Source: Octopus sinensis (Eukaryota). Taken from it: 64,000 nucleotides of DNA. The position numbers were made by a program, and so were the translations under genes. The notes under the pieces were generated by a model. It did not search any database, was not told where the DNA came from, and saw nothing but the letters and a program-made list of their open reading frames with translations. Positions within the stretch are counted from its first letter, which is position 1, and the number at the start of each line of letters is the position of its first letter. Of the stretch, positions 17,196 through 49,726 are shown piece after piece. The stretch covers positions 15,500,001 to 15,564,000 of the forward strand of contig NC_043013.1 of NCBI RefSeq assembly GCF_006345805.1, written 5' to 3'.

Positions 17196-17291
17196 CTTGT
17201 CACATCCAATGCCATACTTCCCAGCTGGACATTGACACGTCAGGCTCACCGACAGGGTTTTTTCCTCATCTGTGCATTCTCCCCACTTGGG
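17196..17291 (-). CDS. Exon PKWGECTDEEKTLSVSLTCQCPAGKYGIGCDK: end of FN2 (WGxC) plus C-half of split EGF (0->0)
   Basis: tttttatcag acceptor, AAG|GTAAAT donor, 96 nt, WGEC and CxCPxGxYGxxC motifs. Confidence 0.92.
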
Positions 17292-18830
17292 CTGATAAAA
17301 ATATCAATGGCATATATATATATATATTATTTATCTTATATAATAATAATAATAATAATAATAATAATAATAATAATGATACTAATAATAATAATGATAA
17401 TAATAATAATAATAATAATAATAATAATAATAATGATAATAATAATGACAACAACAACAATAAGAACAATAATAATGCAGTACCTATTTCTTTACTACCC
17501 GCAAGGGGCTAAACACAAAGGGGGCAAACAAGGACAGACAAACGGATTAAGTCGATTACATCGACCCCAGTGCGTAACTGGTACTTAATTTATCGGCTCC
17601 GAAAGGATGAAAGGCAAAGTCAACCTCAGCGGAATTTGAACTCAGAACGTAGTGGCAGACGAAATACGGCTACGCATTTCGCCCGGCGTGCTAACGTTTC
17701 TGCCAGCTCGCCGCCTTATAATAATGCAGTACCCGGTACTAATTCATGCCCTGATGCAGCGCTTGGCAGTGACTCTCATGGCAACTGAATTTAACTTATT
17801 GGAAGTGTTATCGTACATATTTTGTTTTGTTTATATAAGATGGGCTACAATAAATATTCTACTCAATACCACAGATCTGACAAGCAGATATGTGGTACTT
17901 TAACCAGTTGAACATCTCCTTTAGTGGCTGATGATATGTGTATCTCTGAGCAGGAGTAAAGGGGAGGGTTTTTTTCATGGATCGAGAGGAATTCTTTGGG
18001 GTTTCAATAATCGACTTTTGGAAACATAGGTGTTTCGTTCAGCATCCTTAAACAACCCTTATTCAGGGATCTTTTGAGCTGGATGCACTACTCGATCTGA
18101 AGAAAATTCTAATTGGGCTCCGCCTACTATGTCATGCGCTGTTAATCTTGATATGAGATCACCATGTCGTGCACACATGGTTGTGATGCATGTGCCTGGT
18201 GTGCCCTTATCAGACGGATAGTCATGATGCGCATACTGGGCTTTGTATATTTTATCCCAGCCTCACTTTGATGGCATGCACTGCTCTCTCACTCAATAAT
18301 AATAATAATAATAATAATAATAATAATAATAATGATAATAATATAATAATAATAATAATAATAATAATAATAATAAATAATAATAATAATAATAGTAAAT
18401 AATAATAATAATACTTATAGTAAATAATAATAATAATATAGTAAATAATAATAATAATATTATAATAATAATAATGATAATAATAATAATAGTAAATAAT
18501 AATAATATACTAATAATGATAATAATAATAATAATAATAATAATAATAATAATAATAATATAATAATAATGACGATAATAATAATAATAATAATAATAAT
18601 AATAATATGATAATAATTGATGAGAATATAATATTAGTAAATAATAATAATAATGATATAATAATCATAATAATAGTAAATAATAATAATATAATAATGA
18701 TAATAATAATTAATATATAAAATAATAATAATACTATAATAATAATACTAATAATAATAATAATAATAATAATAATAATAATAATAATAATAATAATAAT
18801 AATAATAATGGCACAATGCCAACGACGTAC

Positions 18831-18993
18831 GTCCTTCGTTTCGCTCCCGGCTGTCACACACCATCCTTTACATTCGCTTGCGATGCCAGAGTGACCGATA
18901 CCATATAACTGCCGTCTCAGACCGAACACCAAGAGAGTATCAGGTCCTCCGCAGCTTTGCATAGCACTTCCGGAGCACTTTGATGTACATTCG
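18831..18993 (-). CDS. Exon: WSC end ECTSKCSGSAMQSCGGPDTLLVF plus FN2 C-half start ECKGWCVTAGSETKD (2->0)
   Basis: CxxxCxGxxxxxCGG WSC motif, tttatttcag acceptor, GAC|GTACGT donor, 163 nt. Confidence 0.92.
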
Positions 18994-19289
18994 CTGAAAT
19001 AAAGACAATTAAAATGATTTTATGCAGACCACAAACCATTAAAAAAGTTTTAACTAATTTTATGCCATTACATATCTTCTACCATGCATCTTTTGTGCTC
19101 CCTCTCTGGACCTCCTAGAATAATTTACAGCCTTATTGCTGGTTCTACCAGCACTGGGTGGAGATGGCAATATAGTTTCCAAACTGACCGCTCTACCTCA
19201 GGCCCTTGTTAACCCATGCAATGGAGAGGTTTGTAAAAAGCAACCAAACTGGCTATGTTCAGTTCGATTTTCATTCTACCTTCACATCT

Positions 19290-19690
19290 TCATCATCATC
19301 ATCATCGTTTAACATCTGCTTTCCATGCTAGCATGAGTTGGACGATTTGACTGAAGACTAGCAAACCAGATGGCTGCATCAGGCTCCAATCTTGATCTGG
19401 CAGAGTTTCTACAGCTGGATGCCCTTCCTATCGCCAACCACTTCGAGAGTGTAGTGGGTGCTTTTACGTGCCACTGGCACGAGGGCCAATCAGACGGTAC
19501 TGGCAACGGCCACCAAAAAAAATTTTTTTACGTGTCACCTGCACACCGGCACAAGTGCCAGTAAGGCGACGCTGGTAACGATCACGCTCGAATGGTGCCC
19601 TTTTAAGTGCCACCGGCACAGACGCCAGTTAGGCACTCTGGCAACGATCACACTCAGCATGGATGCCAGTCATCGAATTTGATTTCGATT
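19290..19690 (-). mobile_element. SINE with (GAT)n tail and tandem TTTACGTGCCACCGGCAC units; second copy 4270-4612(+)
   Basis: GGATGCCCTTCCTA..GCCAACCAC block and (ATC)n end, in both copies. Confidence 0.75.
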
Positions 19691-46389: not shown

Positions 46390-46640
46390 ATGACAATGGG
46401 ATTGCACCTAAAAAGTTACCCTCCGAGGCACAAGTCTGGGCAAGGTTGTTTATGGAAGACCAGCAGTCGCCCATGCATACCAGCCTCTCCTCTCCACGCC
46501 ACCGATGTTATCCAAGGGAAAGGCAAAGGGGCCGATACAGCTTGGCACCAGTTACATCGCAGCTCTTTTATTAACGTGCAAGTGGCCGAGCATTTCATAG
46601 ACACGTGTACCCTTAACGTAGTTCTCGGGGAGATTCAGGT
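46390..46640 (+). mobile_element. Retroposon 3' end family; second copy 58590-58870
   Basis: Shared CGCCCATGCATACCAG.CTC.CCTC..GCCACCGATGTTATCCAAGGGAAAG. Confidence 0.7.
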
Positions 46641-47654
46641 TTGACGTGAGGAGAAAAAAGGGAGGAAGAGTTTGTAGTCCGTATGCTTGTTTGAGCATTG
46701 TGTTAAGCTATGAGTATTGCTTCTATTATTGATCAACTGTTTTTGTGAAGGATCTCAAAGACTATAGAGGTATTGTCTGCTGTTTTCCTATCTGGTATTA
46801 TTTTATGTGGTGTAATGCATTGCATTGCTCCTTATTATAAGTGCACGGTAAGCAATGAATGAGTGAATAGCCAATATAGCAGTTGGAGTCGTCAATTTTA
46901 CTACTTTCCACATTTACAATCGAATTTATAAAACATTATTAGCTTGCTCACAGATTTACATACTTATTGATTGCTATTGATAAGGTTTTATAAATCAGAT
47001 GAACATATACAAAATATACTCATGAAACAACACGCAAGTGCATACCGCTTAACTGTATATTAACACTAAAAAAAAAAAAGCAACAAAAACCATAATGATA
47101 TTTGTTCTGCGCCGAGTAACAGGCACTCTCGCCGTCAGAAATACAGTGAACCAATGATTAACTTTTGGGAAAAAGTGCAATCTATAACTAACGGCGTTAT
47201 AGTTCACCACTTGAGGTATAAAGTAAGTATAGTATAAAATAAATAAATGGTCGCGCTGTTAGAAAGCTCACTTCGCAACGATGTTGTTTCGGGTTCAATC
47301 CCCTTGGGTAGCACCTTGGACAAGTGTATTATACTATAGCCTCAGACCGACATATGTCTTGTGAGAGAATTTGGTAGATGGAAACTGTGTGGAAGTCCGT
47401 CGTATATGTTTGTGTTTGCTCCCACCACCTCTTGACAACCGGCGTTGGGTTTTCACATCACCGTCAATTAGCGGGTTGGCAAGAGGGGTAAATATAGATA
47501 CAAGAAAGTACTGGGGTCGATTTGCCTGTCATCAACGTAATACCTCTCCATGGTCACAGTTCATTTACTGAAACAAATGTAAGGTAAAAAATAAATAACA
47601 ATTAAAAAAAACAGTAACACTTTCTCGAGTGGGAGCAATGTATGAGTGACTCAC

Positions 47655-47779
47655 CTTGTTATTAGCGACACATCTAGAATACGTTTGACCTTTAAAGGTG
47701 AACGGAAGTTGGCACACATCTCTGGCGTTGTCACCTCCTGTAGCCTTAACCTGTACTAGTTGAACCGAGCGGCAAATAC
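47655..47779 (-). CDS. Exon GICRSVQLVQVKATGGDNARDVCQLPFTFKGQTYSRCVANNK: third EGF Cys plus N-half of fibronectin type II domain (phase 1->0)
   Basis: FN2 signature TGG...CxLPFxFxGxxYxxC, donor AAG|GTGAGT, 125 nt, phases match both neighbours. Confidence 0.9.
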
Positions 47780-49573
47780 CTAGAAGAGATAGATAGATGG
47801 ATAGAAGAGGGAGAGAGAGAGAGAGAGAGGAGAGAGGAATGGCTGTTTTAACTGAAGGTAGGAATATATATATATATAACATATATATATATATATATAT
47901 TATATATATAATATATATATATATAATATGTATGCATATATATATATATTATATATACATATGATACACACACACATATATATATACATACACATAATAT
48001 ATATACACATATATATAGATACAGAGACACATATAATATATATATATATATATATATATATTATATATATAATATATATACTACATATGTATGTATGTAT
48101 GCATATATATATACGCATCACACACACACACAACACACACACACACACACACACATATATATTATAGAAAGAGAGAGTGAGAGAGTATATGTAGATATTT
48201 ATTAAAAAATGTGACAAGAGAAACAGGAAATGATGTTGTTCATTTGCATATCAGTACATTTCGTTGGAAACGCGTCTTAATTATGTAAATTACTCAACTG
48301 GAGTACTGAAACAGTGTGTGTGTAGGTCAATTGTAAATAAATATATATGCGTACGTTTAATCGTTCTGTGCAAACAAGTCACGAGATTAAATTGAGGTCC
48401 TTTCACCTTCTGTTTTCAGGATGGGTTTGAGACCTGCTGGTTTTCTGTCACCCTCATTAATGTTCTCACTAACTTTATCTACACTCCTACACAATAACAG
48501 CAACTGTGTGTTTACTTGATGTTATTATTATACGTTGCACAATATTCTGTATTGTGATGCTGTAGATTGAAGATATTGCGTGTAGCGGGTATTTGTGCTG
48601 TCTTTTTTTTTTGTTCCTTCTCGAGCCATGCCTGGCTCATAAGGGCCGGTTTCCCAGTTTCTTGGCGTATAGGTTCCCCACCTGGACGGGACGCCGGTCC
48701 GTCGCAGGTGAGCTGTAAGATGCAGGAGGAAAGAGTGAGAGAAAGTTGTGGCGATTGGGAGTGCGCAAACATAATGAGTTTTGGAATGAGACTTTGTGCC
48801 TTAACAATACCATAGGTATCCTCATGAAACACGTGTAGTCCGTAATATGAAAATTTTGGGATCACGAATATAAATAGTAAGTATATTATTTAACATTTTA
48901 TGGCTTGGTTGAGTTAATATCGTTTGGAGTTGATGAAGTTGTGGGTGTTTCTATCTCTAACAATATTTTGATATATATACATGTACACTGCAACATAATT
49001 TCTTTTCCTCAACAGGCCCTGCCCTATTTAACATTGTCCCGAGGGAGATCAAAGAGGAAAAGGATCCCATCAACTTCAAACAGAGTCTGGATAGATTCCT
49101 TCAAAGAATACCAGATAAGCCACCCATAATTGGATACAACTCACCCAACAAGAACTCACTACTTGAACAAAACTTGACTTAAACAGGATTCGAATAATCC
49201 TATCAGGTGGTGCTATTAAGTTAGACATGGCCTGGACCAATCTCTGGTCGAAACATATCTAAGTTTATCTAAGTTTATATATATATATATATATATATAT
49301 ATATATATATATATAACAAATTATAGAGACGGAAAATGTAATATTCGGGAAACTTTATTGCTCAAAACGATCGTTTCGACTCATCCTAAATCTCGTACAT
49401 TTCCTTTTCCATTTCTATCATTTGTTCTATTACTCAGCAAACACTGAGAAATTCCTGAGGTAGATCCAGCGACAAATACCAGTGACGGGTTGGGGATTCT
49501 CTTCATTCGAACAATCATGCCCTCAACTCACAGCCATTAGATTACAAGAATATGGTTATAAGGATTTACTTAC

Positions 49574-49726
49574 CGGCATTGCTGCATGCAGCTTTCTTAT
49601 GTGCACTCTCCCAGTAGCCACAGTAGTCGTATTCTTCACAGAATGTACCTGTATAACCCGGACGACAAATACAGGTATCCGATTGGATGTCACAGGTTCC
49701 TCCGTTCTTGCAGTCACAAAAAAAGT
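49574..49726 (-). CDS. Exon: EGF domain FFCDCKNGGTCDIQSDTCICRPGYTGTFCEE plus start of split EGF YDYCGYWESAHKKAACSNA (phase 1->1)
   Basis: Classic CxNGGxC...CxCxPGYTGxxC motif, ctacag acceptor, G|GTAAGT donor, 153 nt. Confidence 0.9.

Follow-up and report, generated by a model that had tools for sequence, protein, structure and literature searches.

Introduction

The systems closest to the octopus protein treated here belong to several receptor and matrix families. MEGF10, Draper, and CED-1 are receptors defined by an EMI domain. Kremen, a type I receptor with the order kringle-WSC-CUB, combines a WSC domain with a small disulfide module of the kringle/FN2 type. In the integrin beta subunit, the hybrid domain sits within the PSI domain. 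The betaA domain is in turn inserted within the hybrid domain (PMC12383024). In laminin, an LE module harbours the L4 domain between its Cys3 and Cys4 without any disturbance to the course of the rod (PMC5338690). A polyglycine domain architecture has been described for ALK and for the phage adhesins gp38 and gp24 (PMC9608196). Here, we analyzed a stretch of 64,000 nucleotides of the Octopus sinensis genome (NCBI RefSeq assembly GCF_006345805.1, contig NC_043013.1, positions 15,500,001-15,564,000 of the forward strand; hereafter the window, numbered from its first letter), which carries the gene LOC115221051. In our assessment, the product of this gene is quite likely a type I membrane protein with a single membrane pass and a doubly nested ectodomain, a member of an old and as yet unnamed family of animal receptors.

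According to the proposed architecture, the first EGF-like module of the membrane-proximal EGF stalk would be interrupted between Cys3 and Cys4 by an FN2 module. The FN2 module itself would be interrupted between Cys2 and Trp-Cys3 by about 650 residues comprising LamG-like, Gly-rich, and WSC domains. The chain would then return, complete FN2, go back along a two-stranded beta ribbon, complete EGF, and continue to the membrane, so that the three-domain head would be held sideways on a rigid EGF stalk through both its ends, as on a doubly clamped neck. A double domain-in-domain insertion had been proposed for this DNA by an earlier interpretation of the letters alone (hereafter the sequence-only reading). 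It is supported by domain profiles, orthologues, transcripts, and predicted strands, which together suggest the assembled fold; the accompanying picture of EGF as a base, FN2 as a neck, and the lectin-like unit as a head would be consistent with it.

Gene model and order of the pieces

LOC115221051 lies on the minus strand, and its isoform X1 is the RefSeq protein XP_036366265.1 of 1006 amino acids (P0001), whose numbering is used below. An initial draft of the gene, in which open stretches bordered by GT and AG were strung together, led to this near-identical database protein. From residue 10 of P0001 onward, all exons were present in the window at 100% identity (tblastn), and in a junction search 22 exons running from 49724 to 3815 translated exactly to residues 43-1006 of XP_036366265.1. 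The strings quoted in the sequence-only reading, as well as the nested order of the halves, were found on the minus strand within this exon chain. The pieces of the gene are as follows (window coordinates).

About 63163-63038, 60795-60642, 53278-53183, minus strand: upstream coding exons, a Cys-rich region ahead of the EGF modules (tblastn with bivalve, gastropod, and O. vulgaris orthologues; boundaries approximate)
49574-49726, minus strand: exon 2, a complete EGF-like module C45-C71 and the first two split-EGF cysteines (DYC77, AAC89); sub-threshold hEGF/EGF matches at residues 46-73
47655-47779, minus strand: exon 3, split-EGF Cys3 (C95), strand ICRSVQLVQVKAT (residues 94-106), and FN2 N-half 107-129, GGDNARDVC115QLPFTFKGQTYSRC129 (fn2 profile; strand 94-106 in both models)
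45397-45263, 44725-44501, 42987-42898, 41447-41367, minus strand: exons 4-7, clamp PYSC141 and LamG-like (concanavalin A-like) jelly roll 146-299 (Pfam Laminin_G_3, Foldseek, pLDDT 83-95)
39115-38992, 37200-37097, 35280-35175, 32945-32828, 31830-31682, 29913-29796, 28419-28277, 23302-23136, minus strand: exons 8-15, Gly-rich module, residues ~318-655
22623-22460, 21364-21275, 18993-18831, minus strand: exons 16-18, WSC 676-755 (Pfam WSC), clamp SEC780K, and the start of the FN2 C-half, GWC784VTAGSETKD
17196-17291, minus strand: exon 19, rest of the FN2 C-half PKWGEC799, strand TDEEKTLSVSLT (800-811), and EGF C-half C812QC814PAGKYGIGC823 (fn2 positions 24-42, EGF C-half matches)
13146-13005 and 9952-9800 (isoform X1) or 9952-9827 (isoform X2), minus strand: exons 20-21, two EGF-laminin/MEGF-type repeats of the membrane-proximal stalk
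7174-7038, 3928-3815, minus strand: exons 22-23, transmembrane helix, short cytoplasmic tail, and stop codon (helix 927-955 in the model)

Thus listed, the order in the ectodomain is a complete EGF, the EGF N-half (three cysteines), the FN2 N-half (two cysteines), a single cysteine, and the LamG-like, Gly-rich, and WSC domains. The C side follows with a single cysteine, the FN2 C-half, the EGF C-half, two EGF-laminin-like repeats, and the transmembrane helix.

The FN2 N-half was located at 47741-47670 and TCQCPAGKYGIGC at 17240-17202, both on the minus strand. Joining exon 49724-49574 to exon 47779-47655 gave AACSNA-G-ICRSVQLVQV (GT/AG, phase 1, donor GTAAGT), and joining exon 18993-18831 to exon 17291-17196 gave GWCVTAGSETKD-PKWGEC (GT/AG, phase 0). 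Both key junctions agreed exactly with the RefSeq protein (AACSNAG/ICRS and SETKD/PKWGEC), and all junctions flanking the nested pieces were canonical GT-AG with compatible phases. The FN2 C-half spans residues 783-799 (W783, C784, C799). From FN2 Cys2 (C129) to W783 there are 653 residues, close to the gap of about 650 amino acids estimated earlier, and the halves do not form a contiguous FN2 module of ~40-60 residues. In the split EGF, the insert is placed between Cys3 (C95) and Cys4 (C812), as in the laminin LE/L4 rule, and comprises ~716 residues in total. An extra pair of cysteines had been described as bracketing the insert; C141 (PYSC) and C780 (SECK) do so, and both are conserved.

The gene exceeds the interval 17196-49726, which is bounded by the exon 19 end and the exon 2 acceptor. 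It reaches ~3815 on one side; on the other, it extends beyond 63163 and out of the window. At its 5' end, the RefSeq model is truncated: its start Met is internal and lies within the second upstream exon 60795-60642 (PTGSTMLSCTYWSS). The O. vulgaris model CAI9735421.1 is longer by 328 residues at the N-terminus, where orthologues carry GON and WSC domains; these extra residues must be encoded outside the window.

Joined halves against domain profiles

For the native full-length P0001, Pfam reports just Laminin_G_3 and WSC above threshold. The fn2 family is unreported, and it is likewise missing from the Pfam annotations precomputed for every orthologue, in agreement with the earlier expectation that standard scans would miss the nested unit.

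The FN2 N-half of octopus by itself matched positions 1-19 of Pfam fn2 (PF00040) with 24.1 bits; N-halves alone covered positions 1-19/20 of 42 with 22-24 bits. The octopus C-half by itself matched positions 24-42 with 12.9 bits. When the two halves were joined in silico, as the sequence-only reading had suggested, the match covered the full profile (positions 1-42 of 42) with 37.8 bits, approximately the sum of the separate halves. The joined constructs of six other species gave 28.9-37.4 bits, and seven species in all were above the curated cut-off of 22.2 bits. The printed E-values refer to 24,736 models, and fn2 tested by itself is far more significant; on this scale, even the weak C-half is therefore significant in a single-model test. 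The FN2 signature, CxxPF..G..Y..C followed by WC.T...[WY]GxC with four cysteines, is present as C115QLPFTFKGQTYSRC129 and WC784VTAGSETKDPKWGEC799. It is kept in the aligned sponge and mollusc proteins, and its C-side half also in the tunicate Ciona. At the level of sequence, we consider the FN2 reading firm.

The cysteine pattern of the split EGF is C77, C89, C95 ... C812, C814, C823. In the joined construct, ACxxxGxC aligned to EGF Cys2-Cys3 and CxCxxGxxGxxC to Cys4-Cys6, and the EGF N-half alone gave no match to the Pfam EGF profiles. The EGF reading is consistent, though sub-threshold. No Laminin B (L4) domain was found in the insert by Pfam; fn2, Laminin_G_3, and WSC were found instead.

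Conservation across animals

Relatives were sought in 1.84 billion representative proteins and in three word-indexed searches. Full-length relatives were found in bivalves (Crassostrea, Saccostrea, Ostrea, Mytilus, four scallop/clam genera, Mya, Mactra, and unionids) and gastropods (Lottia, Patella, Batillaria, Babylonia, and Littorina). The remaining groups with such relatives are other cephalopods together with Ciona, and the homoscleromorph sponges Oscarella and Corticium. The family members are labelled 'uncharacterized' or, loosely, MEGF10, MEGF11, or crumbs (homolog).

All twelve flanking cysteines are kept, with near-invariant spacing, in 24 sponge and mollusc proteins. In these proteins, the N-side cysteine spacings are 11, 5, 19, 13, and 11, the insert between the clamp cysteines has 611-654 residues, and the C-side spacings are 3, 12-15, 12-13, 1, and 8. 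Such constancy from sponges to molluscs speaks for one constrained structure rather than two loose linkers. The order of the pieces is shared by more than 25 independently annotated proteins, and orthologues of sponge, gastropod, bivalve, and cephalopod accordingly show the arrangement anticipated for them; the Ciona protein is N-truncated and retains the C-side half. The nested layout thus appears to have been kept since sponges in an undescribed receptor family. By our own estimate, the twelve-cysteine unit is more than 600 million years old.

In one sponge paralogue (P0182), EGF Cys5 and Cys6 are both lost, while Cys2 and Cys4 are kept (read by eye; a single case). This paired loss fits the EGF pairing proposed below. 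The C-halves of FN2 and EGF in P0182 are degenerate, and the Trp ahead of FN2 Cys3 is also lost.

Structure models and predicted disulfides

Two AlphaFold2 models of P0001 were computed, one from 23 and the other from 34 aligned family members, and were read via DSSP strings and the predicted local distance difference test (pLDDT). The mean pLDDT was 70.5 and 74.3, respectively. Around the split modules, where pLDDT was mostly 64-82, both runs agreed on a helix at 76-84, a 13-residue strand at 94-106 (the VQLVQV side), a hairpin 119-121/124-126 in the FN2 N-half, and a strand 783-787 (WCVTA) forming the FN2 C-half hairpin 783-787/795-799. They also agreed on an unbroken strand of 19 residues, 795-813, spanning KWGEC, TLSVSL, and CQ. 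The two short beta-like segments that had been noted on either side of FN2, VQLVQV and TLSVSL, therefore lie in the strands 94-106 and 795-813. In the models, these elements are what a nested fold predicts.

The long strands 94-106 and 795-813 probably pair. The second FN2 hairpin (783-787 with 795-799) would run on into a ribbon of 94-106 with 800-813, and this ribbon would be the Cys3-Cys4 hairpin of the EGF module in stretched form. Four predicted disulfides would join the outgoing and returning chains, namely C89-C812 of EGF, C115-C784 and C129-C799 of FN2, and C141-C780 of the clamp; C77-C95 and C814-C823 would be local. The two FN2 bonds would follow the 1-3 and 2-4 pairing of that module, in which two antiparallel hairpins pack against each other. 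We infer both this disulfide map and the way in which the halves come together.

Several observations weigh against a doubly nested ectodomain. The predicted template modelling score of the AlphaFold2 models is ~0.5, and the pLDDT of the connecting arms is moderate, down to 57-67 in places. Of eight species, seven gave 17-21 bits for the concatenated EGF halves, just below the cut-offs of 21.5-22.1 bits (PF00008/PF07974), and the remaining one gave no match. The EGF Cys1-Cys2 loop is unusually long (11 residues), and Cys1 is unaligned by the profile. With six cysteines on either side of the insert, the count per side is even, and parity alone does not force pairing across it. In addition, the octopus protein has just two stalk repeats and no NPxY motif, and a function deduced from orthologues may not transfer to it.

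Part of these observations would also fit a real order in which the halves are degenerate, independent disulfide-bonded caps or linkers flanking the LamG/Gly-rich/WSC unit, with their likeness to half-domains a relic. The joined EGF is below the Pfam cut-off, internal pairing of the six cysteines per side is arithmetically possible, and the arms have moderate pLDDT. We nevertheless regard this explanation as unlikely. The laminin LE module shares the EGF insertion point (PMC5338690), and the joined FN2 is full-length and above threshold in seven species, each half aligning to its own part of the profile. The near-invariant spacing of the twelve cysteines since sponges suggests one constrained fold, and the predicted strands of 13 and 19 residues would hardly stay unpaired.

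A domain-swapped dimer, in which FN2 and EGF would each combine the N side of one chain with the C side of a second, seems very improbable. Receptor tyrosine kinases commonly act as dimers, and the sponge paralogues are receptor tyrosine kinases; split domains can swap in principle, with nothing direct to indicate it here. The monomer models, however, close the ribbon within a single chain, and the conserved clamp C141/C780 at the base of the insert fits single-chain closure. The insertions of laminin L4 and integrin beta likewise close within a single chain (PMC5338690, PMC12383024).

Transcript evidence

The doubly nested order is also found in transcript-like sequences. A cephalopod orthologue of 1591 amino acids (P0185) is encoded by one unbroken 4776-nt frame on three ~5.3-kb contigs, which were assembled independently from three sequencing runs. 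P0185 is colinear with the octopus protein over the whole nested unit, with 47% identity. Because the genome introns run to kilobases and yet the contigs are intron-free, we infer that these contigs can only be transcripts. The same order of the pieces is present in an open reading frame from a sponge transcriptome (P0180, EukProt). Nesting would be contradicted by transcripts in which additional exons complete FN2 or EGF locally; no sequence of this kind was detected in the P0185 contigs or in P0180.

A gene-model artefact, in which an EGF-FN2 gene would harbour a separate LamG/Gly-rich/WSC gene in one of its introns or extra exons would complete the domains locally, has an almost negligible probability: the RefSeq model is computational, is truncated at the 5' end, and needs non-canonical donors at two junctions in the window, but all junctions round the nested pieces are canonical with compatible phases, the same order occurs in the intron-free contigs of three runs, in the sponge open reading frame, and in more than 25 independently annotated proteins, and the parts follow one another without an intervening stop codon or start signal.

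Further features of the locus

Intron 14 (donor at 28283-28270, acceptor 23303, minus strand) requires GA-AG to yield the RefSeq protein (ATCG/GAAGTT). A GT located 3 bases past this donor would insert one Ser, a residue absent in the aligned orthologues. The intron is either genuinely non-canonical or a T is missing from the assembly; the O. vulgaris model drops seven residues at this site, where predictors struggle. The exon 21 donor of isoform X1 is also non-canonical (GGATGC at 9799; acceptor 7174). In isoform X2 (XP_036366266.1), exon 21 ends at 9827 with a canonical GTAAGA and gives ...KCEKA-R-LSGG, so X2 looks the sounder model.

Two candidate coding stretches were rejected. The candidate exon 34979-34785 ('CVDGGGVGVHGHTC') was dropped, as it has no acceptor and is missing from the RefSeq protein. 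A Thr-rich open reading frame at 49964-49730 (minus strand), in frame with exon 2, is placed in an intron by the RefSeq acceptor 49727/49726 and by the orthologues. It consists of ACC/ACA-type repeats directly upstream of the exon 2 acceptor, and a mucin-like alternative 5' extension is possible.

The window is AT-rich (G+C ~36%) and laden with microsatellites, which fits a cephalopod genome; many TA, CA, and CT microsatellites lie in the introns. Intron fragments at 20042-19878 and 25943-25770 (minus strand) with the motif GHV.RM....R.PK resemble C-terminal tails of what we take to be retroelements of the long interspersed element (LINE) type. Two short interspersed repeat families recur in translated form, one at 18288-18062, 32318-32170, and 31099-30918 and the other at 59603, 14041, 6509, 24973, and 29648.

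Composition of the head

The LamG-like domain matched Laminin_G_3 (PF13385) with 71.4 bits over residues 146-299 (profile positions 1-151 of 151). Foldseek matches of the model were PAPP-A LG, pentraxins, neurexin LNS, and laminin LG, with template modelling scores of at most 0.63 on the target. Whole-model fold searches against the PDB and a viral library were dominated by LamG and were uninformative on FN2, EGF, and the Gly-rich module. The WSC domain matched PF01822 with 63.7 bits over residues 676-755 (profile positions 1-82 of 82), and its eight cysteines are 679, 704, 708, 724, 726, 741, 745, and 753.

The Gly-rich module comprises ~340 residues, in which strands alternate with about nine Gly-rich motifs, e.g., GSGGGSGG, GGSGGGAI, and GPGGGGSGGS. 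It matched no Pfam family, including the Gly-rich families (E up to 10), and no PDB chain, ALK/LTK included, either by sequence or by a 10-sequence profile. In the models, several of its stretches are neither helix nor strand and have pLDDT 83-95. Such stretches would fit polyglycine-II helices of the ALK, gp38, and gp24 type. Kinship of the module with ALK/LTK was rejected at the sequence level, as the sequence, profile, and Pfam searches were all empty, and would be conceivable at the level of the fold alone.

The LamG and Gly-rich pair is also present in bacterial proteins (P0004). A green-alga protein (P0191) shares part of the Gly-rich region, and long top alignments to prasinovirus proteins (BFVD) hint at the pair there. 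It may be speculated that the pair was inserted whole, as an older ready-made cassette.

Receptor family and possible function

From the N-terminus on, members of the family have a signal peptide, then GON-like and WSC domains, followed by EGF and Cys-rich modules, the nested unit, a repeat array, a transmembrane segment, and a tail. The array of EGF-laminin/PEAR1-like repeats (PF00053, PF23301) is long in most species; in octopus, it consists of two repeats. NPxY motifs recruit phosphotyrosine-binding (PTB) adaptors and drive uptake in proteins of the Draper/CED-1/MEGF10 and LDL-receptor types. An NPxY-type tail motif (GFSNPxY or ENPFY) was found in sponge, oyster, the gastropod Batillaria, and another cephalopod (ENPFY), and several bivalve tails have a degenerate form. 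The octopus tail exon 3928-3815 encodes GFGDDFLENVVNE in place of GFSNPxY, and the motif is lost.

Two proteins of the sponge Oscarella lobularis (P0182 and P0183) combine the same GON/WSC/nested ectodomain and a membrane span with a tyrosine kinase that has a kinase insert. The solved structures closest to this kinase were an EGFR chain, followed by FGFR1, RET, and PDGFRA. With these best PDB matches, an ALK-type identity of the sponge kinase was rejected.

The head, with its lectin-type LamG and carbohydrate-binding-type WSC domains, might bind glycans or matrix, and the stalk and tail might couple this binding to uptake or kinase signalling, because orthologues carry GFSNPxY tails and sponge paralogues carry a tyrosine kinase. 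We hold both suggestions with low confidence. A broader scenario is rather doubtful. In it, the doubly nested unit would be a hitherto unrecognised ligand-binding head that the last common animal ancestor already had and that was reused on at least two kinds of receptor, MEGF-type endocytic stalks and receptor tyrosine kinases, with the Gly-rich part forming a polyglycine-II lattice of the ALK/LTK and phage-adhesin type. If true, this would link ALK-type ligand recognition with a receptor family of much greater age and breadth.

Scans read the family merely as LamG, WSC, and EGF repeats. The doubly nested reading explains the orphan Cys-rich stretches and defines a conserved, testable unit whose twelve cysteines keep fixed distances. 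Should the assembly be confirmed, the protein would offer a rare example of nesting at two levels, with a 650-residue guest of three domains borne by hosts of ~40 residues, and, to our knowledge, the first FN2 module known as an insertion host. It would also be a useful case for how small disulfide-knotted modules tolerate insertions. That the same ectodomain also occurs on a tyrosine kinase of a sponge suggests a module that senses a ligand, and it offers a route to finding this ligand.

Comparison with known systems

A literature search for a protein of this architecture or of this family returned nothing relevant. FN2 as an insertion host, this three-domain guest, and the family itself appear to be new. 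Nesting itself is not new, and the statement of the sequence-only reading that no protein with this topology had been described was too strong: laminin L4 splits an EGF-like LE module (PMC5338690), and integrin beta is nested as well (PMC12383024).

Kremen differs from the octopus protein in its linear order without nesting and in lacking LamG and Gly-rich domains, and no kringle match was found in the octopus protein by Pfam. The likeness to MEGF10, MEGF11, Draper, and CED-1 concerns the orthologues, which have long EGF-laminin/PEAR1-like arrays, one membrane span, and an NPxY-type tail. The N-terminus is different, as the octopus family has GON-like and WSC domains, EGF, and the nested unit; an EMI domain was not found by Pfam, and full-length orthologues begin with GON and WSC.

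ALK/LTK (TNF-like, glycine-rich, and EGF-like) and the phage tips are similar in having strands that alternate with Gly-rich motifs; an EGF-like module and a membrane span then follow. The ALK/LTK domain is characterized by a lattice of polyglycine-II helices that arises from a beta sandwich. In contrast, neither sequence nor profile similarity to ALK/LTK was found, and the sponge kinase is nearest to FGFR, RET, and PDGFR rather than to ALK.

Integrin beta is, like the proposed octopus ectodomain, a two-level domain-in-domain receptor with the ligand-binding domain at the tip on two chain connections. The folds are unrelated and without sequence similarity, and the octopus hosts are tiny (~40 residues each) and disulfide-knotted, with a far larger insert.

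Laminin LE/L4, as found in the alpha and gamma short arms, shares the plan of the split EGF: in a rod of EGF-like repeats, an EGF-like module is split at Cys3/Cys4 by a globular insert and is then completed. L4 is a single CBM35-like beta sandwich of ~200 residues, whereas the octopus insert consists of a split FN2 and three domains and has ~716 residues; the two inserts have no sequence relation. The LE module has eight cysteines, and the octopus module matches six-cysteine EGF profiles.

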